From Chara braunii (lineage: Eukaryota > Plantae > Charophyceae): a DNA stretch of 64,000 nucleotides. A program made the translations under genes and the position numbers. Positions 10,401-63,945 of the stretch are shown piece after piece (position 1 is the stretch's first letter; every line of letters starts with the position of its first letter). The stretch spans positions 4,113,449-4,177,448 of the forward strand of contig BFEA01000033.1 of the NCBI GenBank assembly GCA_003427395.1. Reading direction: 5' to 3'. The notes beneath the pieces are model-generated. The model did no database searches, was not told where the DNA came from, and saw nothing but the letters and a program-made list of their open reading frames with translations.

Positions 10401-10610
10401 GAAGAGCATGTCCCAACACATTCGTGATAGGAGTTAGCCTTGTAGGTTACAGTACAGGATTGTCACCCGGCAGATACTAGGATCGAATCGGAGGAACCGC
10501 ATCTCTTGGCTAGCTCCGTTTGGAGCTGCCCACCATGATTGCTGCCGGCGGAGTTGATTCCGAACGTTCGATCATGGAGATCGTGCGACCGAGAATCAGT
10601 CGCGCGGGGT

Positions 10611-10670
10611 AGATTAGCATGACCCCTGCGCAAGGATGACACGCATAAATCGAAAAAAAATGACCCAAAA
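10611..10670 (+). pseudogene. U6: U6 snRNA 3' half fragment inside the LTR
   Basis: AGATTAGCATGACCCCTGCGCAAGGATGACACGCATAAATCGA is nearly identical to the plant U6 ISL/3' region. The 5' stem and ACAGAG box are absent. Confidence 0.9.
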
Positions 10671-13339
10671 TGAATTTTGAGTCCATCAGGACTCGAACTT
10701 GGGTCTGTACCTCAGCAGATCGTGGGTACACCACGATGTGAAGTGACCGTTGGCAGAGCCAACGAGGTAAACGAAAAAAAAAAAAAAAATCGAAGTGTCA
10801 TTTGGCACGTCTAGAAGTGATTGGGGCGTTTTAAGCCCGAGTACTCTGACAGTGCTCGTAAAAAGGGCCACTATTTCGTCACGAGGTAAGTTTTTTTTTT
10901 TTNNNNNNNNNNNNNNNNNNNNNNNNNNNNNNNNNNNNNNNNNNNNNNNNNNNNNNNNNNNNNNNNNNNNNNNNNNNNNNNNNNNNNNNNNNNNNNNNNN
11001 NNNNNNNNNNNNNNNNNNNNNNNNNNNNNNNNNNNNNNNNNNNNNNNNNNNNNNNNNNNNNNNNNNNNNNNNNNNNNNNNNNNNNNNNNNNNNNNNNNNN
11101 NNNNNNNNNNNNNNNNNNNNNNNNNNNNNNNNNNNNNNNNNNNNNNNNNNNNNNNNNNNNNNNNNNNNNNNNNNNNNNNNNNNNNNNNNNNNNNNNNNNN
11201 NNNNNNNNNNAAAAAAAAAAAACAAACAAACTAAAACTAAAACGAGAACGTGAGGCGCCACATGGCGCCGCTAGAAGAAACTAGGGCGTTTTAGCCCCAA
11301 CAATTGCTGATTGCTCCCTGAAGAACGGGCGACAGTGGCAGAGGAAGCGGCTCCTTCCCCCAAAAAAAAAAAAAAAAAAAAGCGGTTCGTTTTTTTTTTC
11401 TTTCTTAGATTTTCGTTAGATTTTTGTTAGACTCTTTTTTTTTCCAATTAAAAAAAGAAAGTTCTTCTTCTTGGTGCACTGTGAACCCGTTCGTTATGAA
11501 CGAATGGGCAAAATTTTGACTGTCCCAGGCTGTTTCGTCGGACTTACACCGGCTCATCAAGGGGCTATGCCCCCACAACCCATCTTTGAATGGGCAAAAT
11601 GAGTGGGCTGCTGGGCGATGCCTGTACCCAGCGCTGTTTGCATCCGGGTAAAGGGGCGTTGAGTACGAACGAAGGGGGGGGAAAGGGGAATAAAGCCCTG
11701 ATAAGCTTAACTCCAGTGCGCCCCTGCAAATAAAGGGGCGGCCGCTCATTTCAAACGGCGAGCTGCCCCTGCATAGATAAACAAGGGGTAGGTAGGAAAA
11801 GATGGGAAAAAAAAAGGGGGGCGTCGCGAATCTAATTGCGACGCAGGGTCAGATGCAGGGGTAGAAGCATCTGGACTCTCAGTTGACAGCAGACTGTTGA
11901 AGTTGCTCTACTTGGCTCTATCTGGTCGGGGGTAGCGGCCAGATGCATTACCAAGGCCTGGAACTTGGTTCCCCTAGGGGAACATCAAGTTTCCCAGCCC
12001 TTGATCGCGTTTGAGATTGAGGGTCAGGCCTCACTCCGAATTTTGGCTTGGGGGGTAAGGCAGCTGCCCTCAGCCTCCAGCCAGCTATAAAACAATCAGC
12101 ACCCAGCCAGCCAGCATTCATTTGTGGCTGGTGCTGCTAGCGTTTCGTTTGGGTGAATGTTGGTTGTTGGAGGAGAAGCTTCTAGTTGGAGTGGAGAATT
12201 AAAAGAGGTGGAGGGTGGAGATCTGCAGGAGGATTGAAGTTCGAGCAGCCATAGCCACCACTTCACTTTGTGAAGTGCTGGGGTTATGTTGCACATGGCA
12301 GCCATAATTGGAGAAGTGCTGAGGAGATGCTGCGCGGTTGCGGCAATGACAATTTTTTGTTGACGTACTGCGGGAGTGCTGCCGAAATTTTTCGGCGGCA
12401 ACTGTGATTTTTTTGGCAGTGGCGTTGAAGCGCTGCCGGATTTTGCGGCAGTGAGACCGGTTTTAAAGGCAGTAGTGCGGAAGCGCAGCCGGTTTTTCAC
12501 GGTAGTGGCCGCATTATTTTTGCACTGACTACATAAAGCGGTGGTTGGGCATTGGCGCAGGGAAGGTCCCGTTGAAGTGGTAGTGCGTTGTGAAGTGACA
12601 TAAACGGCGTCGCAATGACGCTCTGACATTGGAGGCGAGTGACAGCGGCATCGAGACGTTGTCCAGTTGTTGGACGTGAATGTGTGTTGAGAGAGTAATA
12701 TGGCAGGTTGTCGTCACAAAGGAGTGGTGTGAATCACTTTGCTGACGACTTGTTGTGACGACCTTCTCATCTAAGGGCGAGATTCCATACGGTTTTTTTT
12801 AGTGGGCCATTTTTTACAACTTCACCTAAGGTCAGTCAGTTAATTTATTGACTCAGATTTCCCTTCACATCTGTGTGAACCCACACTTTGCTTCACCTTG
12901 TTCATTGAATGTTCATTGGGAAGGCAAAGGAAAGTTGTGTAAGTCATGCTTGTGAATGAAGAAGTCTGACTTAAGTATGGGAATGCACTGGTTTTCTCTT
13001 GAACTTATCGTTTTTACGTGTTGTGCAGATAGGTAGAAGAATGTTTGCAAAGGGGATTGATTATGCTTGTTGGAGAAAAGAGAAAAGGATTGTCTTTTCT
13101 TTACTTCTCACCCGCCTGCATGCCAAAAATGGTTCGATGTTTTGAAAGACTTTAATTTCGTGCGCACCGCAGAATGAATTCAATTCAAATAAAGCAGATA
13201 AGGTCAAACGGATTTAGCTTTCTCCCCATGATTGACTTTTTCTATCCCGAATGACCTTATCTACCTATGTCTGCCCAAATGATCCTCGTTGTCTATCTTC
13301 TTCAGTTTCTTTTTCATCCAAGTTACCCAAAACTTATGA

Positions 13340-39261: not shown

Positions 39262-40473
39262 TTGAACTTCCTACTTGAGAAGGTCCCAAAAGCCAAGCAC
39301 TTCAATTTGAAAGCCACGACGATGCTAAAGCAGAACTTAAAAACGGCGGGAAAGAGGCTGAATATTTTTGGCGACAACACGATGGCCCTGATGGCTAGCT
39401 ACGACATCAAGGAGATGTTCACTTCGCTGCCACATGAGGCAATTCGGTGTGTTGTAGATTGGCTGCTGCAGCAGTGGGAGCTCAGAGGAGTGTTCAAATT
39501 GAGTCTGAATAGACGTGGACGAGTGGTAACCCTTAGTCAGAAAAGCCTGGGCCCAGGCTATGTGAAGGATAAGTTCTCTCAGATTCGGCAGATGGTCAGC
39601 TATGAATTAAAAAACACGTATATTATGTGTAGGAAGGTGATATTTAAACAAGTAGTGGGTATCCCTATGGGGAAGAGCTCTCGCCCTTCGCTGGCCTGTG
39701 TGCTGTGTGCAAAGCATGAGGTGGACTTCATTAACTCCCTGGGAGCTGACCAGAGACTGGTACATGGGGTTAGGCTAGTTGATGATGTCACTTTGGGGGT
39801 TGCCTGTGACATGAGAGACCATCGGAGTATATCAACAACGAAGTACATATGTCAGAAATTTGCGAAGGCGTATGGAGAACAACTGGTACTAGTGAGAACA
39901 GACGACGGTACCAACTCTTGGGATTTTTTGGGGATCCGAGCCGCAGTGCTGCCCGGACCTATCAAGTTTGTCCTTCGCCCCAAGCATAAGAATGAGGGAG
40001 CGATGGCAGATGACCCACTAGACTTCAGATGTTTCCAAGATTTTGCCTCATACTCAGACAAGCGGGCGAAGGTGGGCACAGTGATAGCAACACTTTACAG
40101 GATCAAGCAGCACGCTAGTGATTCGGAGACAGGCGTACAAGCGACACTATCCGTCAGCATCGAGTTGGGGTGCTGGGGGTATCCCCCGACGCTCTTTTCC
40201 AATGCTCTGCCAGTATTTGCCAGATCCACCGGCCCGTTTGGAGCAGCATTGAAGACGCTGGCCGAACAGCCGGTTAAACTGATGCAAGGAGGACCCCTAT
40301 GGGAGGAAGGAAGGGAGGATGAAGTGAAAAAGCCCGTACACATGGACGGCGGCTCATTGAGAGAGAGCGGGGGAGGTATACCGTATAATGGGGCTCGATA
40401 CCGGGGCCCGAAATGTACACATGACAGAACAGTAGGCAGGTGCGGTGGAGGCAGGGACAACGCAGTAGGTTAG
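39262..40473 (+). CDS. Penelope-like reverse transcriptase core (fragment of the disrupted ORF)
   Basis: RT motifs YDIKEMFT, GIPMG, LVDD and FLG. Confidence 0.85.
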   Translation: MNFLLEKVPKAKHFNLKATTMLKQNLKTAGKRLNIFGDNTMALMASYDIKEMFTSLPHEAIRCVVDWLLQQWELRGVFKLSLNRRGRVVTLSQKSLGPGYVKDKFSQIRQMVSYELKNTYIMCRKVIFKQVVGIPMGKSSRPSLACVLCAKHEVDFINSLGADQRLVHGVRLVDDVTLGVACDMRDHRSISTTKYICQKFAKAYGEQLVLVRTDDGTNSWDFLGIRAAVLPGPIKFVLRPKHKNEGAMADDPLDFRCFQDFASYSDKRAKVGTVIATLYRIKQHASDSETGVQATLSVSIELGCWGYPPTLFSNALPVFARSTGPFGAALKTLAEQPVKLMQGGPLWEEGREDEVKKPVHMDGGSLRESGGGIPYNGARYRGPKCTHDRTVGRCGGGRDNAVG

Positions 40474-48454: not shown

Positions 48455-50700
48455 GACTGCCTGACAACTGATGCCCTGCAATGACTGAATTCTAGATCCA
48501 GCAGCCAGGCCCGCTATGTTCTCTCCTAAAGAGAAAGAATGACAAAAGTCAAAGCATATTATCACAGTGTCATGTAACCCATGATACTATAANNNNNNNN
48601 NNNNNNNNNNNNNNNNNNNNNNNNNNNNNNNNNNNNNNNNNNNNNNNNNNNNNNNNNNNNNNNNNNNNNNNNNNNNNNNNNNNNNNNNNNNNNNNNNNNN
48701 NNNNNNNNNNNNNNNNNNNNNNNNNNNNNNNNNNNNNNNNNNNNNNNNNNNNNNNNNNNNNNNNNNNNNNNNNNNNNNNNNNNNNNNNNNNNNNNNNNNN
48801 NNNNNNNNNNNNNNNNNNNNNNNNNNNNNNNNNNNNNNNNNNNNNNNNNNNNNNNNNNNNNNNNNNNNNNNNNNNNNNNNNNNNNNNNNNNNNNNNNNNN
48901 NNNNNNNNNNNNNNNNNNNNNNNNNNNNNNNNNNNNNNNNNNNNNNNNNNNNNNNNNNNNNNNNNNNNNNNNNNNNNGCAACTGATATAACCTGCAAGGA
49001 CTGAATTCCAGAACCAGCAGCCAGGCCCGCTATGTTCTCTCCTAAAGAGAAAGAATGACAAAAGTCAAAGCAGACTATCACTCAGGCTCACTAGACGGAA
49101 AATTCTACAGCCTGCAGGTTCACACCCCATCATGAGCCATCAAATCCCCCACCAAACAGGAAAGGTCTGTCACAGCCAGAAAATACACTCCCGACATGAC
49201 ATGCGGCCGGCACTAGAGGCACAACATGGCCGTGTAATGACAGTCCCGGCCACTGCTGTTCAACCTGACTGGAAAAAACTGCGGCAGGGAGGTAGCCAAG
49301 TAGTGGTATATATTGTCAATGGAGAACTGCCCGGGAAGCATAGGCAGAGCGGTGAAAGAGGACAGCAAACGAGGGGCTGTGATGCATATATGCTACACCG
49401 TATACATCGTCACACAGAGCTGCCTGGTAAACCGTAGGCAGAGAGGGAGAAACGGACAACAAATAAGCGGCTGTGACACACTGCTTCATTGGAGTTTCAC
49501 TGAGTCATCAGGAGGCTGAACCCTCTACAGTCTGCAGAATCCCCTAACTGATTACACTGTAACCGATAGTCCATTTGAACCCCGCTTGTGTTCAAGCATG
49601 AANNNNNNNNNNNNNNNNNNNNNNNNNNNNNNNNNNNNNNNNNNNNNNNNNNNNNNNNNNNNNNNNNNNNNNNNNNNNNNNNNNNNNNNNNNNNNNNNNN
49701 NNNNNNNNNNNNNNNNNNNNNNNNNNNNNNNNNNNNNNNNNNNNNNNNNNNNNNNNNNNNNNNNNNNNNNNNNNNNNNNNNNNNNNNNNNNNNNNNNNNN
49801 NNNNNNNNNNNNNNNNNNNNNNNNNNNNNNNNNNNNNNNNNNNNNNNNNNNNNNNNNNNNNNNNNNNNNNNNNNNNNNNNNNNNNNNNNNNNNNNNNNNN
49901 NNNNNNNNNNNNNNNNNNNNNNNNNNNNNNNNNNNNNNNNNNNNNNNNNNNNNNNNNNNNNNNNNNNNNNNNNNNNNNNNNNNNNNNNNNNNNNNNNNNN
50001 NNNNNNNNNNNNNNNNNNNNNNNNNNNNNNNNNNNNNNNNNNNNNNNNNNNNNNNNNNNNNNNNNNNNNNNNNNNNNNNNNNNNNNNNNNNNNNNNNNNN
50101 NNNNNNNNNNNNNNNNNAACGATTGCCCGAAAACCAATGAGGGGCTGTGGCACACTGTTAAATTGCAGTTTCACTAGCTCGTCAGGAGGCTGAACCCTCT
50201 ACAGTCTGCAGAGTTTCGTCACTGATTACAGTGTAATTGATAGTCCATTTTAACCCCGCTTGTGGTTAAGCATCAACGACTGCCCGGCAACTGATACCAT
50301 GAGGTGGGCACTTCCACTGCCCTCAAGAACCTGTGACGGAGATCAAAGCAGACTATCATGCATCCACACCAGATGGAAAACTCTATGCAGGTTCACAGCC
50401 CCATGCGAAACCAGTAAAACACCCTTGAAACAAAGAAAGGTCTGTCACAGCCAGAAACTACACTCCAGACATGCCGCTGGCACTAGAGGCACAACATGGC
50501 TGTCAGAGAGGGAGAAGAGGACAACAAACAATGGGCTGTAACAGATTGTTTCGTCAGAGTTTCACGGACTCATCAGGAGTCTGTATAGATGTATATTGTC
50601 ATAGAGGACTGCCCGGCCCGGTGGACCGGAGGCAGAGTGGGAGAAGAGGACAACAAACGAGGTGGGGGTGCGATAGACTGTTTCGTTGAAGTTTCTGTAT
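48455..50700 (-). repeat. Tandem array of hammerhead-bearing units (degenerate; two N-gaps)
   Basis: Repeated blocks 48465-48556/48979-49072, 49070-49230/50348-50500 and 49505-49600/50180-50273. Hammerhead remnants on the minus strand at ~49480-49534, 50152-50207, 50543-50579 and ~50674-50695. Confidence 0.75.
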
Positions 50701-51259
50701 CAAGCCAACTTTGTACTCACACATCCGAATTGGAAATAGAAAGCTTGAATGAATCAGTGTAAACTTGTAAATGCAACTCATGCTACGATGACTTGTTTCT
50801 GCTGTGCCAACTGCACAACCTTGCCTCTGACATGTCAGCTACGCCACCTTGTCTCTGACGTGACAACTATGCCGTTGGCGTTTCTCTATCAGGCAAACTG
50901 TCTCCTCAACCTCTAACAGCGCCCGATGGGAGGTAGAGAAAGAGGTCACTCTCCGCTTGAGAAATCTTATCCCTACCTCATTAAGTAATGATTGAGCTGG
51001 TGTTGTAGACAGACCTGACCAGCTAGCGGAAAAAGCAAAGGCCATAAGTAGACAGACCTGACCAGCTAGCGGACAGCGAAAAAAGCAAAGGCCATAAGCT
51101 CCCTGTAGTGGTCTTACCTGTTTGTCTACCTCCACTAATGCGTTGTCGTTGAGCATAGCCTNNNNNNNNNNNNNNNNNNNNNNNNNNNNNNNNNNNNNNN
51201 NNNNNNNNNNNNNNNNNNNNNNNNNNNNNNNNNNNNNNNNNNNNNNNNNNNNNNNNACT

Positions 51260-52319: not shown

Positions 52320-52475
52320 CCATTACCAGTGGCAATGGGGGTTGATGACGAGGGTTTGAACGTAGGAATTGCGCCAGCGGAGATGCCAGGTCCGGATCGG
52401 GAACTTCTGGGAGAGGACAATCTTGCTGATCCACTCGACAAAGAGATTCATTCCTTTGAAGTGGACCCTGATCAG
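52320..52475 (+). CDS. XPB: XPB exon (PLPVAMG...DKEIHSFEVDPDQ)
   Basis: CAG acceptor, GTTAGT donor, 156 nt. Ends in the conserved HSFE(I/V)DP motif. Confidence 0.88.
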
Positions 52476-53013
52476 GTTAGTAGTGTGTTTGTCCTTAGTG
52501 GAGGGCCTCTCTTTTTTTTCCAAACCTGCTGCTTGATCGCACAATTAAACATAGTTAGTTTTTGGTTATTATTAGTACTTATTACCAGTTTTTGGTTATT
52601 ACCACCATCATTATTATTGATCAGGTTAGTAGTGTGTTTGTCCGTAGATGGAGAAGCTCTCTTATTTTTCCAAACTTCCTGCTTGATCGAATGATTAAAC
52701 ACTGTCAGTGTTTGGTTATCAGTACACTTTACGACCATCGTTATTATTTCTTCTAAGTTCTGCTTTCGTGGAAGTAGAAGAAAATTGAAGACTGGCAAAT
52801 GAAATGGGAGAAATGAAAACAAAACCAATTCTAACTTCCTAAGTGAAAAAACAGCAAATCAATCGAGGTAAGTAGATAAAACGAAAGTGGAAATGAACTA
52901 TAGATAAAACAAAAGTGGAAATGAACTATAGATAAAGCAAAAGTGGAAATGAGTTGTGACAAATTGACGAGGTATAAAGCAAGTGAATGAGACAAAAGTG
53001 CAAACACACACAT

Positions 53014-53091
<78 letters not shown>

Positions 53092-53269
53092 AGTTTTTGG
53101 TATGTTTGTTTTTCTGCCTCCCCCCTATTCTTTTCTAAGTATTTTTGTATCCCCAACTGAGCACCTTTAAGTAGTGCCAAACAGTCGGTGGTTCCTCGTT
53201 TGGAGTGCCTACTGCACTCTTATGGGGGCCGCTCAGTTGGGGATGTCTGTGTTGCCTGTAGGTGATGAC

Positions 53270-53523
53270 GGATGCTCGTCTGCTCTTCGAGCCTTGTTAT
53301 ATTCACGGATAGTTGTTTCTATAAAGTGGTCGAGTTCATTAAGGTATATATTTGATAGTAGGGGACTAAGGCCGAAGGGCCGCCGCCTGGCGGCGCCTAT
53401 GGTCGCCTCTTCAATCTCTCCGTGTGGCATATGAAAAAAAGCTTGTAGTCCAGAGCGGATTAGTTTGAGAATCCGTTTATCTCGGATTGTTCGCCGGATG
53501 ATCTTATACAGAGTTCCATGATT
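53270..53523 (-). pseudogene. Group II intron reverse transcriptase/maturase fragment
   Basis: NHGTLYKIIRRTIRDKRILKLIRSGLQA, a frameshift, then LSPLLSNIYLNELDHFIE: RT domains 3-4 of group II intron-encoded proteins. Confidence 0.8.
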
Positions 53524-54169
53524 TACGGCTCCAGGGCCTTCGGCCTCCAGGGATCCTTCAATCTCCCTGGCTCAGTGGGTGGTGGGAACCAACAGTCTGT
53601 GGGGTTCACCTGTGATGTGAGTAGGTGATGTGCTGCTTTGCTTCGTGTTGGATGTGTGGACGGCCTCGTCTGCGCTCCGCCACTGCCTTGCTGCCCGTCC
53701 CGCTTGCCTCGCAGGTAGTTCTTGGCAAGCTGCTGTCTTCGCTGTGTGGTGTGGCCGAGTTGTGGTGTTGTCTTGCGCTTCGCTGCTCCGCTGCCTCGCC
53801 GCCCTTCCACGGGTCGTGCCTTCCGTGTCCTTTGCTTGCGCGCCGTGTAGTTCGGTTGCCGTGTTGGTGTTTCCTTGTGCTTCACAGCATGGTTGCTCTG
53901 CTGCGTGTCCGCTCGCCCTGTCGTCCCTTGCAGTGTGGTTGTCTTGGTGGTGTTGCCTGGTGCTTCACTGCTTGGTTGCTGTGCTGCAAGTCCTGCGTGC
54001 CATGTTTTTCCTTGCAGTCGTCTTTGGCGTTGTGCAGCAGTGTTGCCTCTACTGCGTTGCCTGGTGCTTCGCAGGGTTGCTGCCCGCTGCTATGTTCCAC
54101 TTGGGGACAGTCTGCCTTCAGGAAGGGTCAAAGGGTGCATGACCCAAACCATCAATACGGGCATTCCGC

Positions 54170-54225
54170 AGATTGTCGAGGGTTCAGCCTCCTGATGAGT
54201 CGGTGCAACTCCGACGAAACAATCT
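54170..54225 (+). ncRNA. Type III hammerhead ribozyme, intact
   Basis: AGATTGT-C-GAGG(gttcag)CCTC-CTGATGA-GTCGG(tgcaact)CCGAC-GAA-ACAATCT. All three stems pair and the core is canonical. Predicted cleavage after GUC at 54177. Confidence 0.93.
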
Positions 54226-54648
54226 TTCATCACCAGCTTTTTTATTTTTTTATTTTTTTTGGTCCTTTGATTGTCTTGGGACTTGTGTTTTTTTTGGTAT
54301 GTCTGTTGGGTGTGTTTGTATGGCGTTTGTCCTTCTGCCTCCCCCGTGCCCTCCAGCTTCAGTCCTTCGTTGTCCTCTGTGCTTATGTATTGTCTGCCCT
54401 CCCACCTCCCCCTTACCCTCCAACCTATATGTTCCTCATACTTTTCATTCACACTGTATGGCAACCGCTCCATTTACACGGCTACGACACACTCTAAAGC
54501 GCCTCGGCTCCAGTGGTACCGCATAACTCGTTCCATTGTTGACAGACTTCAGCATCCCTGCTAGGATTTCGTAGTGTGCCGGCCATTATACCGGAGCTTG
54601 ACCATCCACAGTTAAAGCATGGTATGGCGTGCGTATGAGCACACACCC

Positions 54649-54704
<56 letters not shown>

Positions 54705-56052
54705 ACCATAATTTCCGACTATCTCGATTGGGAATGAAAAAAGCGTGCTGTGCTGGTGACTGGCTTACAGCACACCGTGAAGAGGGCGTGCAACCTGTGC
54801 CGCTGGCCAGGTGGTGGAAATATCCAGGAGGCACGCAGTGTTGGTCCATTACCTCCATCAGCAGGATGTTGCAGCAATTTTTCTCTCTTTTTTGCTGCTA
54901 TACACATGCACACATGCATACGCATGCACATACACAATGTCACATACGCACAAGGTCAGATCGGCAACATGTGAACCACCAGTCTCCCGCAGCCCATTTT
55001 GTCAAACCAGAAAGTTTTCCATACTGTAGGTGTTGAACCAGCTGCAGCGGGCTGATACATCGAAAGATTCGAAAGCAAGCCACTGTTTACATCCGCGCAA
55101 AGTTTGGTAGAAGGGTGCCGACACTGGTGGTTATAAAGGCGCAATAATGTTGGCCATCGCAGACAGCCCACTCTAGAACCATGATAAGAGTAGCAATCAT
55201 TTTTTTTGTTTCTTGAAGTAGGTAAAGGCACACATCAAGTAGGATTACCAAAACCGATTCGCGCTCACCTCTTTTCTCCCTCGTGCTCAGCACTACCGCC
55301 AACACCAACTGTTTTTGACCTTGTGTACCTATCCTCCGTGGGGTTCCCTTTTCCCCGTTTTCGCACAGTTTTCGTAGAAAAGCTGAAACTGACATGTTTT
55401 TTTTTTTTTCGCCATCCATTTTTCTATACGCCATCCGTTTCCGCATATTAGTCACCAGGCATCCGGGTTGATGGCTGCAATGATTCAGTTAATTGCGGGG
55501 TGTTAATTGCGGGGTGCGTATCAAGTGAACATGCTGTTCGGATACTTTGGCAAACTGGTGAAGTCCAAAAGAAGCCCACTGAGGTTGGCGAGAGGCACAA
55601 AATGCCCGGTGAGTGGGTACGGGGTCCCTATCATGGACTCGGCAGTGCAGAGGGACTATGCGTTATGAATTATGTCTGGGCTATTTTTTTCTCTTGCCTA
55701 TGGAATCTGGCTGTTTCCATGCGTATCGCTTGGGGAAAAAAAGTGTTCATTGAACTTCATTCTGATGATGAGATTCTGATGATTAGATTCTGATGATGAG
55801 AGTCCTTGGCTGGGATTTTGCTGCCGCTGCTACGTGTGGAACTCGTGTCGTTGCTAAGGCTGGGACATGCCTTTTGGCTTGTGTTACAAGTGGTTGTGCA
55901 TGCTGACTTCTTTTTCTGTTTTTTATTTTATTTTATTTCATTTTATTTTATTATTTTATTATTTTTATTTTTCAGCTGAGTCCCTCAGTGCATGAGATGA
56001 TGTTGGAACGTCTCAGATTGTTGCATTGAAATGATGGGGCTACACGTTACAG

Positions 56053-56133
56053 GTTGAGCACGTCAAACAAAGGTGCCTTCCCAACGAGCTCAATTTCCCA
56101 ATGCTGGAGGAGTACGACTTCAAAAATGACACT
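56053..56133 (+). CDS. XPB: XPB exon ([27 protein letters not shown])
   Basis: Translated by hand; not in the ORF track. CAG acceptor, GTGAGT donor, 81 nt, conserved PMLEEYDF motif. Confidence 0.95.
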
Positions 56134-60360: not shown

Positions 60361-61705
60361 ACAATACAGTACTGCCATAGTCTGGTTACAGCTGTCTTCA
60401 TGCGATCAACACACGTGTGATGCAGTTAAGTGGAGTTCTTCACTACAGTTAGACCTGGTCTTCTTTCTGGTAACTGTATTCCCAAACTCCTTGGAATAAT
60501 CTTGAAAATATTTAAATATTGTATTTGCAATCTTGACTGCGAGTGACATTCTCACATTACAATGTGCAGCCTGTCTGGGACACATGAGATGTGTAACTTG
60601 TTGGTCCCGAAGTTCCCAAAGAACCTAACCCCCATATCCTGTTTAGAACTTTAGGTGGCATATTTGACGTATCGTTCTCCTAAGACCTGAACCCTGGAAT
60701 TTGGCATTTGAAGGGGACTGCATCCAACAGTCAATAATGGCATGCGTGGGAGCTCAGTTATCATACAACACAGGAGATGAGGAAACGTTGCACAATCACA
60801 CCTCTTCTCTTAAACCACCACTACCTTTCAGGGAAATGCATGGGAAAGGTAGTGGTGGTTTATTTTTTATTTTTTATTTTTTTGCCATAAAGTTGGAGAA
60901 CCAAGTACAACATTTGCAATCGGAACTAGCTTGTGCGGAAAGGAATTGTTGCACTAGGGGAAAGCTAGGACATGGGATAATGTGCACAAGTCTACCGCTC
61001 ATCTTGTATGTTTTCTTTTCAGTATATGGTAGAATTGCGGCTGATGGTGCACAGCAGGCCAATTCATTGTTTGCGATGTGTTTGAACTACCGTCTTGACC
61101 CGAATAGAACACCGGGTCATTCCAGCTGTATTTGGGTCACATGTCTCTGTCTAGAGACAGTGATCTAGCTACAGTGATAATGACCGGGCATTCTATTTGG
61201 GTGAAGACAGACGGTGCCTTGTTTGCATGGAAGGGAATTGTGCATGAGGGGGCGGTCAGTTGTCATGCGGCATAGGGACGGGGAAAAGCTGCGAGTCACA
61301 CTGGGATCGGCCACGCTCTGTTAACAAGCTTTAAGAAGAATCAAAGTCAACAACAAAAAGTTTTGCAGATTTCAGAATCGCTGTCAAAAGCGCATCGGAC
61401 AAGCTTGTTGCTTGCAGTTTGAACTGTGGAGATTGCTTGTGCTGCAGATTTGCTGCAAACAGATGTCAGTGTGCATGCAGTAACATTCTACTGCCTATGG
61501 CAGATATGGTGTGGAAACCGGTGCGGGTGTGAGTCCCAATGACGCCACGCTGTCATGAAAACATGCTCATCTGTCTTTGTGAGCGGCGGGGAGGAGAATG
61601 GGAGGGTGAGATGGAGAGAGAAAAGTGCAGCAAGGTCATGGCAGGGATTAGGTGCGTTCATGAGAACCAACTCCCGTGCCTTGTTTGCCTGCCATGTCCC
61701 CCCAG

Positions 61706-61793: not shown

Positions 61794-63252
61794 GTAAGCG
61801 TGGCCGCCCTCTTCCGCTGATCACAACGTGAAAACGATAAGGGAAATGTAATAATTTTATAGAAAGCGATTGGCATTGTGATTCCGATTTCGATATCGAT
61901 AAGGAGACCAAAGCAATGACATCCATGGAGCCACATCAAGGCAGAGAACCCTGCATGATGATTGAGGATGGCAGCCATGGTATCCTCTTCTTGTGGCTGA
62001 ATGGTGCACACGTATGTAGCTGTTGATAAATAGGTGATGAGTTCGAATACTGTGGGCTGCAAGACTATTAGGGGGAACTTGGTTTAGGGAAAAAGGAATG
62101 GTAGAAAGAGAGAACAGGGATTGTCAAAGGAATCCTGATCTGAATGTACAGTGCTGATGCAATGCCTCCGCAAGATGTGTGCAAATGGTAGGCACAGCTG
62201 ACCCTTTTTGCAGGGCATATAAATGAGGTCGGGTAAAAAGGATAGCTAGCCCTGTCGATGAAAATTTATGAATTGAAGAGGTAAAGAGGGGATTTGATAG
62301 GATATGACTGCACTGCGGCATTTCTGTGCAACACACGCGGAATTGGAGCTGATGATCTGAGATGAAAACGACGGTTTGGTAGAGGGAGGGAGCGGGGTCG
62401 CGGTGGTCTGCAAAAATGTTGTGTAGAATTGCAATACAGACTACTTTTGGCTGAGGGTCACATCAGGATTCCTCATCGAATAGAAGATAAAAAAGAAGAC
62501 AACAGAATCAGACTAAGGTATCCCCCTTCAAAGTTTAAAGTTTAAACCCCTTTAGCCCGTGAAAACCAGTTTATACCCGTCTTCCCCTGCTTGACAGCCA
62601 ACACTCGAAAAAAGAAAGGAGCCTTGGGCTCCTCTGGCCATGCACAGAAAACCTCTACCCAAAAAAGAAAGGAAAAAAGCAGAGGGCTGATTTTTGCCTG
62701 CACGGGGTGACCCCGTGCAGGTGAGCCCCAGGTGACATGCCCAGGTTGCGCAGCCGGGCTGCCGGGCGATCCAAGTGGCCTAGCTTTTAAAGGCTGAAGT
62801 GCTTCCGGTGGAATCCCAGAGATGGGGTAACATGGGACTGAAATATTGCGTCCTGGAAAGCTTTAGAGTCTTGACCGTCTTTTTTTTTCGGCTTTCCATG
62901 TGTGTGTGGCACAGAGAGAGAGAGAGAGAGAGAGATGGCTATGTATAAGTAAAAATAACCGGCATTGAGGCCCCTTTCACAAACCCGGGAATTCAGTGTG
63001 TACACTAAAGGTTTCATTTTGTTTGGTGTACATGCCAGTAGACGTCTGACCACATCAAGTTTTATCTTTGTTGATTGTATATTTTTACCAGTGATGACAT
63101 AAAACACCGCTGGCACCCTATTCCTTCTCTATTGGCTGCGAACACACTGAGAGATGCTGAGGTACTGTTGACTGTACATGAGAACTGCAGTGATCCTTAG
63201 CAGCTGGAATTGAATGTTGTCGTTGATGATCTGTCCTGTCTTGTGCGCGCAG

Positions 63253-63590
63253 GCAGAGCACGGTCAGGTATCATTGTGCTTCCTTGTGGTGCTGGAAAGT
63301 CTCTTGTGGGCGTGTCGGCAGCAGCCCGAGTTAAGAAAAGCTGCCTTTGTCTGGCCACAAACTCTGTGTCAGTTGATCAGTGGAGGCTGCAGTTCAAACT
63401 GTGGTCAACGATCAAAGATGAGCAGATCATTCGTTTCACATCTGAAAGCAAGGAAAAACTCCCCTCTGGGCCTGTGGTAGTGGTGACCACCTTCAACATG
63501 ATTGCATTTGGAGGTCATCGATCTGAAGACTCGGAGAAGATCATTGAGGAGATTCGCCAGCGTGAATGGGGCTTGCTACTGATGGACGAG
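63253..63590 (+). CDS. XPB: XPB exon with Walker A (SGIIVLPCGAGKS) through the start of Walker B (LLLMDE)
   Basis: Canonical XPB helicase motifs I, Ia and II. CAG acceptor and GTCAGT donor. The gene continues beyond the window. Confidence 0.97.
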
Positions 63591-63945
63591 GTCAGTAAAG
63601 ACTTGAACGTGATTGTTGACTCTCCCAAGTCCTAATCAAACGTGATGTAATTGTCAGAGGTCGACTGTGCCAGCTATACCCCGGTGGCCGGACATTCTGC
63701 TCCTGGTGTCGAATATCACAGTGCACACTACCTGCCCTATGTATTCAGAGTTTGAATTGTGCAAGTCAGTTCATCAACCGTATAACTGTACCACTGCAGA
63801 TGTGCATGCTGCTGTGGTGTTGGAGAACACATAGGGTGGTGCTATGTATGATGTCAGAATTTCCACAGCCCTCCGGAAATGCTGTAAACAAGCACCCTGA
63901 CTGAATTCGACTGTTGTGCTGCCTTTATTAGTCTGACTTCATCTG

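Follow-up and report, generated by a model that had tools for sequence, protein, structure and literature searches.

The XPB intron and its ribozyme

The stretch of Chara braunii DNA analyzed here, referred to below as the window, comprises 64,000 nt of contig BFEA01000033.1 (assembly GCA_003427395.1) and carries the essential gene XPB on its + strand. Using the XPB exons singly as queries in protein searches, we found that the helicase exon at 63249-63599 resembles human XPB (E = 3.5e-38) and that the 27-codon exon at 56053-56133 resembles the Ssl2/XPB segment preceding the helicase domain (E = 0.002). Immediately upstream of the latter is an intron of 3577 nt (52476-56052, + strand): its first nucleotides, directly after the exon that ends at 52475, are GT (from 52476), and its last, directly before 56053, are AG (56051-56052). 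The initial annotation had located a hammerhead ribozyme on the sense strand of XPB between these two exons, a placement with which both the splice sites and the exon matches agree.

The ribozyme, an intact type III hammerhead, occupies 54170-54225 (+). By direct reading, stem III is made of seven Watson-Crick pairs (AGAUUGU, 54170-54176, with ACAAUCU, 54219-54225) and is open toward the flanks, and helices I and II are closed by loops, which is the type III topology. Stem I has 4 bp (GAGG/CCUC, 54178-54181 with 54188-54191) and a 6-nt loop, GUUCAG; stem II has 5 bp (GUCGG/CCGAC, 54199-54203 with 54211-54215) and a 7-nt loop, UGCAACU. Between the stems lie the core segments CUGAUGA (54192-54198) and GAAA (54216-54219), so that the conserved type III core is complete: C3, U4, G5, A6, N7, G8 and A9, then G12, A13 and A14, the A15.1-U16.1 pair (A54219-U54176) and a nucleotide other than G at position 17, which is C54177. 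The last is the cut-site nucleotide, in the context GUC|G. All that catalysis requires is present, and helix III has sufficient length for one motif on its own to work in cis. If the motif folds, the GUC|G site and the full core predict cleavage between C54177 and G54178, the position already proposed for it, which is separated from the 5' splice site by 1702 nt and from the 3' splice site by 1875 nt.

The Rfam Hammerhead_3 model (RF00008) aligned to the motif over its full length (model positions 1-54) with 46.0 bits. This is 2.5 bits under the gathering score of 48.5, and a scan at that threshold was blank; the E-value was 2.7e-8 in a search of 2.5 kb and 6.9e-7 when all families were run over both strands of the complete window. 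For an isolated RNA of 66 nt, the minimum free energy and centroid structures are both predicted to be the exact three-stem hammerhead, with a folding energy that is not unusual for the base composition (z = -0.87). A 29-nt pattern consisting of the core and stem II occurred three times within three mismatches, against 0.00 expected in shuffled sequence. Direct reading, RF00008 and the isolated fold therefore all bear out the original description of the motif, with its canonical core, three perfect stems and loops of 6 and 7 nt.

Two further matches to structured RNA families lie in the window, both under the gathering score. A U6 snRNA-like fragment at 10605-10671 (+) scored 39.5 bits with RF00026 (gathering score 44, E = 2e-6). 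On the minus strand at 60737-60866, within a eukaryotic intron, the plasmid pseudoknot PK-repZ scored 38.5 against 44 bits; despite its low E-value (1e-4) this match is probably spurious.

The insert and its microsatellite flanks

The sense ribozyme is contained in an insert of ~1.56 kb (about 53090-54651) that has (CA)n on the same strand on either side. The left tract occupies 53003-53089 (+) and the right tract, with the same strand and motif, 54652-54702 (+); both were read directly and belong to one repeat family (D4). The arrangement looks like an insertion that split a (CA)n microsatellite. Upstream of the ribozyme, the element body (53852-54169, +) is G+T-rich and A-poor, with an internal duplication of ~83 nt at 53843-54048. 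The part downstream (54226-54651, +) runs into the right (CA)n tract. Its homology to the antisense copies described below extends ~20 nt past the ribozyme, and the rest of it had no match elsewhere within the window.

A 290-codon open frame at 53625-54497 (+) runs through the ribozyme. It is spurious: the A-poor composition, most marked in the stretch 53625-54140 (AT skew about -0.7), leaves few stop codons. Word searches of the protein collection with this 290-aa ORF and with a 127-aa antisense ORF that also spans the motif returned no relatives. Nor was a close paralogue of the flanks of the sense copy found in the window, in 185 kb of sampled C. braunii loci or by the ORF word searches. 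A possible second, decayed ribozyme at 53593-53627 was rejected, since its score of 29 was matched by the window background of 28-34.

The same insert also holds, on the strand opposite to the ribozyme, a decayed fragment of ~340 nt from a group II intron reverse transcriptase/maturase (53236-53571, -). It corresponds to positions 136-215 of TIGR04416 (E = 1e-11), including a degraded YADD region, and matched group II and retron-type reverse transcriptases (RTs) in the PDB (5hhj, 6ar1) with E-values of about 5e-7 to 1e-7. Most probably the fragment was captured or came from an organelle; it may stem from organelle DNA, from template switching that captured it or from an older insertion. Because the insert holds this unrelated antisense fragment, it may be composite rather than a single insertion.

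Relatives of the ribozyme

Five relatives of the ribozyme were found in the window, all on the minus strand: four in the neighboring XPB intron (at ~49.5, 50.17, 50.56 and 50.70 kb), where they are antisense to the gene, and one at 11.55 kb. The initial annotation had described the antisense relatives as decayed, and all five are indeed disabled, either by core substitutions or by 5' truncation. The copy at 49478-49533, which was recognized by alignment and BLAST, has a broken stem II and carries G10.1->C, C11.1->U and A15.1->G. At 50152-50207, stem II is also broken, and the copy reads UUUAAC instead of CGAAAC, so that it lacks G12 and C11.1. The copy at 50543-50583 is 5'-truncated and starts in loop 1; its core and GAAA are intact, but the cut site and the 5' strands of stems I and III are missing. 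Another copy is represented at 50675-50704 by its 3' half, which is truncated and decayed and is followed by the post-ribozyme tail of the family. Outside XPB, the copy at 11527-11581 has C3->U and a G at cut-site position 17. This leaves 54170-54225 as the one copy in the window that is intact.

The closest of these alignments pairs 54151-54246 with 49552-49458 (78% over 96 nt, E = 2e-15 by BLAST) and covers the ribozyme with ~20 nt on either side. Farther upstream, about 300 nt of the body are weakly collinear with the body of the antisense unit; under lenient scoring, the alignment scored 66, whereas shuffled sequences averaged 39.7 (sd 7.1) and 0 of 300 did as well. The antisense copies form an array (48455-50760, -) of head-to-tail units, ~390 nt from ribozyme to ribozyme, with a repeated post-ribozyme tail module; the array is interrupted by assembly gaps, seen as N runs at 48593-48977 and 49603-50117. 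Copies in it are 5'-truncated inside the ribozyme. The family is not confined to this contig: the array sequence recurs on C. braunii contig BFEA01000231.1 (locus L123) with 76% identity over 346 nt (E = 1e-63), and short stacked units that begin inside the ribozyme abut TA-repeat stretches there (L123:1640-2110). In 185 kb of other C. braunii DNA, taken from eight loci, this was the only copy of the related family.

Among the four copies that retain both strands of every helix, four stem pairs differ on both sides yet stay paired, a number reached by 8 of 500 shuffles; with only four sequences, this evidence for compensatory change is modest. At a single stem III pair, for example, C-G, U-G and U-A are all found. 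From this comparison of copies, the compensatory changes point to selection for the fold during the spread of the family, that is, selection acting on the element and not on XPB.

Predicted folding in the XPB transcript

In its natural context, the ribozyme has a competitor. The 10-nt segment GACAGUCUGC at 54106-54115 (+), hereafter the upstream arm, is complementary at 10 of 10 positions (one of them G-U) to 54168-54177, which comprises the 5' strand of stem III and the cut-site C, 61 nt downstream of the arm. The predicted duplex energy is -14.6 kcal/mol with the arm and -5.7 kcal/mol for stem III. For 54100-54240, an alternative fold is predicted at -44.7 kcal/mol against -37.1 kcal/mol when the hammerhead is imposed as a constraint, a gap of 7.6 kcal/mol, and the modeled probability of helix III in that context is close to zero. 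Similarly, in ensembles predicted for 140-260 nt of real context, the cut-site strand pairs with the arm and not within stem III. Both strands of the competing duplex are transcribed earlier than the 3' strand of helix III.

When the 150 nt upstream were shuffled, 50 of 5000 shuffles (1%) contained a 10/10 complement. Low predicted probability of stem III was also seen in 30-59% of controls with shuffled upstream sequence, and since these controls suppress stem III as well, the evidence for a state locked by the arm is weak. Part of the arm aligns to GGGCAGTC, a conserved stretch of the family body, and for this reason the arm was probably inherited from the element. The initial annotation had expected the ribozyme to cut XPB pre-mRNA co-transcriptionally; judged from the predicted folds, such cutting is uncertain.

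Comparison with retrozymes

Retrozymes are non-autonomous retroelements with hammerheads, and include the LTR retrozymes of plants and the non-LTR retrozymes of metazoans (Cervera et al. 2016, PMC4918200; Cervera and de la Pena 2020, PMC7229834). Their repeats do not code for protein and every unit contains a hammerhead; in this the Chara family resembles them, its antisense array being arranged head to tail in ~390-nt units. With the plant LTR retrozymes it shares a type III ribozyme with a stable helix III, whereas the ribozymes of the animal elements are of type I. With the metazoan non-LTR elements, on the other hand, it shares the lack of an LTR, a primer-binding site and a polypurine tract. 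The Chara copies differ from retrozymes in being 5'-truncated inside the ribozyme and in lying within (CA)n or TA-repeat stretches.

Plant retrozymes have LTRs of 300-400 bp, a tRNA-Met primer-binding site and 4-bp target duplications (PMC5680766, PMC7761336). None of the three was found at the Chara motif, and we rejected an assignment to the plant LTR class. The window contains no second sense-strand copy of the ribozyme, and no direct repeat surrounds the motif. The best candidate for an LTR pair, 53093-53234 with 54312-54470, scored 57.5 against 46 +/- 6 in shuffles, the highest of which reached 66, and was discarded. Four matches to the tRNA-Met primer-binding site within two mismatches occur in the window, no more than expected by chance, and all are far from the motif; a search for tRNA genes found none. 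Plant retrozymes also give rise to circular RNAs of 600-1000 nt that fold compactly and stably. The predicted folds of the RNA on either side of the cut site, 53600-54177 (z = -0.6) and 54178-54648 (z = +1.25), are no more stable than those of shuffled sequence.

Comparison with Penelope-like and other RT-bearing elements

Craig et al. (2021, PMC8557442) described Chlamys Penelope-like elements in C. braunii, of which two types have canonical hammerheads, with an insertion bias toward (CA)n. The insert family occurs in the same species, prefers the same (CA)n for landing, includes 5'-truncated and partially tandem copies, and likewise has its hammerhead close to the end of the element. Such traits are present at our loci as (CA)n on both sides of the insert and as truncated and tandem copies in the antisense array and on L123. 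Chlamys elements differ in having an RT/endonuclease ORF, none of which is present in the Chara insert; this comparison is with their published description. Kinship of the type III family with one of the Chlamys types is possible.

RT genes of C. braunii were sampled starting from an ORF in the window at 39262-40470 (+), which has 403 codons and RT-like motifs but no Pfam match. Its only relatives in a collection of 5.8 billion proteins were eight C. braunii proteins with 37-89% identity, the nearest at 79-89%. The genes of these relatives lie on contigs of GCA_003427395.1, some of them inside the repeat-flanked elements described below. The eight related loci (185 kb) contained no type III hammerhead, and the idea that the ribozyme is the tail of such RT elements was dropped; in the window no hammerhead of type I or type III adjoins the ORF.

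Two of the loci, L120 and L123, have direct repeats of 380-900 bp, 89-94% identical and ~5.2 kb apart, which flank RT genes and end near (CA)n. A putative type I hammerhead was seen at L120:7658 and 12895, L121:12253, and L123:9465 and 14655 (contigs BFEA01000002, BFEA01001020 and BFEA01000231, respectively). Its stem I is CCUC/GAGG; helix II has 6 bp, the closing pair being G-U, and helix III is a single pair with a CAUG or CG loop. Stem II differs from that of the ribozyme at 54170-54225, and helix III is short and palindromic. Rfam did not detect this motif even at E = 10, and the proteins of the L120 and L123 RT elements gave only weak Pfam matches to RVT_1. Read by eye, the RT-flanking repeats look like Penelope-like elements with pseudo-LTRs, and both the type I and the Penelope-like labels derive from that reading; the hammerheads published for Penelope-like elements are of type I, with a shape as in the L120/L123 motif (PMC4209133). 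We considered and rejected the idea that the type III ribozyme is part of the terminal repeats of such elements: the L120 and L123 repeats, which represent one sampled RT family, carry the different motif and have no similarity to the insert. Beside transposon genes on one of these contigs is a fragment resembling eukaryotic SSU rRNA (L121:24248-24374, +; RF01960, 49 against 50 bits).

Comparison with other hammerheads and intronic ribozymes

Scanning metagenomes with the core and stem II pattern returned 116 contigs (L001-L116), nearly all of them with prokaryotic or viral type II hammerheads. These have the same stem II and loop 2 consensus, GYCNG-UGNAANU-CNGAC, between identical core halves as the XPB ribozyme. 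They differ from it in that, in nearly all, helix III is closed by a hairpin and helix II or I is open, and their flanks are unrelated. Many of them occur in a conserved context that starts with GGATCCC and ends with GTCGGCC. The shared stem II and loop 2 are a recurrent ribozyme module and not evidence of kinship.

A parallel in position is provided by the intronic HH9/HH10 and CPEB3 ribozymes. Like the XPB copy, these self-cleaving ribozymes are found in introns of protein-coding genes, in sense orientation, and could in principle sever the pre-mRNA. Each occurs as a single copy whose orthologous position is conserved, and the CPEB3 ribozyme has been shown to affect the expression of its host gene; the XPB copy, by contrast, is a member of a repeat family. 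It is not single-copy, with its five relatives in the window and a further copy of the antisense-array family on another contig. According to the account of Fong et al. (2009) given in PMC10919898, slow ribozymes in introns leave splicing undisturbed and fast ones abort it, and the CPEB3 ribozyme is apparently tuned between the two (PMC10919898).

Origin of the ribozyme

We consider it probable, with good confidence, that 54170-54225 is the self-cleaving module carried by a single copy of a retroelement-like repeat family that is non-coding and bears hammerheads, a passenger in the XPB intron that has been kept intact by selection on the element and not on the host. Under this explanation, which accommodates all the observations, the insert with this copy would occupy a (CA)n microsatellite located by chance in an XPB intron, the copy having the same orientation as the gene. 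Its ribozyme would serve to process the element's own multimeric or read-through RNA; its intactness would have been kept by selection on the element, with the host taking no part in maintaining it, and the sense copy would be intact through being younger or luckier than its neighbors. We infer that the family moved through RNA, that the sense copy was inserted recently and that it has no host role. The initial annotation had offered recent insertion or selection as reasons for the intactness of the motif. A comparatively recent insertion fits the sole intact copy; selection for a role in XPB is not supported, the motif being one copy of a dispersed family in an insert that splits (CA)n, with compensatory changes that point to the element.

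An alternative is that the host has taken the ribozyme over, such that tuned cutting of nascent XPB pre-mRNA sets XPB output in the manner of CPEB3, perhaps with the arm as an on/off switch. In its favor, an intact motif stands on the sense strand with 1875 nt between it and the 3' splice site; modulation of a host mRNA by an intronic ribozyme has a precedent (PMC10919898); and the 10-bp upstream complement is rarer than expected by chance. We nevertheless regard a takeover as very unlikely, given that the motif belongs to a mobile repeat family in a microsatellite-bounded insert and that the arm was probably supplied by the element. The suggestion that the ribozyme tunes XPB output accordingly finds no support here. 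The fuller version, in which XPB output has become dependent on a switch donated by a retroelement and gated by the 10-bp arm, as a plant-lineage counterpart of CPEB3, is slightly more improbable still. Coincidence is a further option, namely that 54170-54225 matches the hammerhead consensus without any ribozyme history. The Rfam score under the curated cut-off and the ordinary folding energy in isolation would be in keeping with this, but the window-wide E-value and the enrichment of the 29-nt pattern are not, and the family relatives, homologous copies with compensatory stem changes, refute it; its probability is negligible.

Less remote than these, though still improbable, is membership in a known class of element, with the motif belonging either to an LTR of a plant-type retrozyme or to a Chlamys Penelope-like element, as part of its pseudo-LTR or of its 3' tail. 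Plant LTR retrozymes typically have type III hammerheads (PMC5680766, PMC7761336), Chlamys elements of this very species combine canonical hammerheads with a (CA)n preference, and the 5'-truncated and tandem copies in the antisense array are a Penelope-like habit. Against this stand the absence of an LTR-like direct repeat around the motif, of a tRNA-Met primer-binding site within two mismatches near it and of a predicted compact, rod-like fold in the RNA flanking it. The RT-bearing elements sampled here, at ~5.2 kb, have a motif of type I topology and share no sequence with the insert, and type I is also what has been published for Penelope-like elements.

As for the consequences to the host, we put the chances at about even that a minor fraction of XPB transcripts is cut. 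Little consequence of any cutting is expected for XPB, because the cut-site strand has a stronger partner that is transcribed earlier and because splicing copes with a severed intron as long as the ribozyme is not fast. Since slow intronic ribozymes spare splicing and fast ones abort it, an intact sense ribozyme in an essential gene is no paradox.

As a single locus, the XPB ribozyme is of little weight, given that the literature already describes both hammerheads in introns and C. braunii retroelements that bear them. It is, however, a natural test case for the tolerance of severed introns in streptophytes, with an intact sense ribozyme and a defined cut site in an essential single gene. The family to which it belongs targets microsatellites, has no LTR and carries a type III ribozyme of viroid-like kind, and it shares its genome with RT elements that bear a putative type I motif. 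It therefore bears on the source of the ribozymes of plant retrozymes and, possibly, of viroid-like RNAs.
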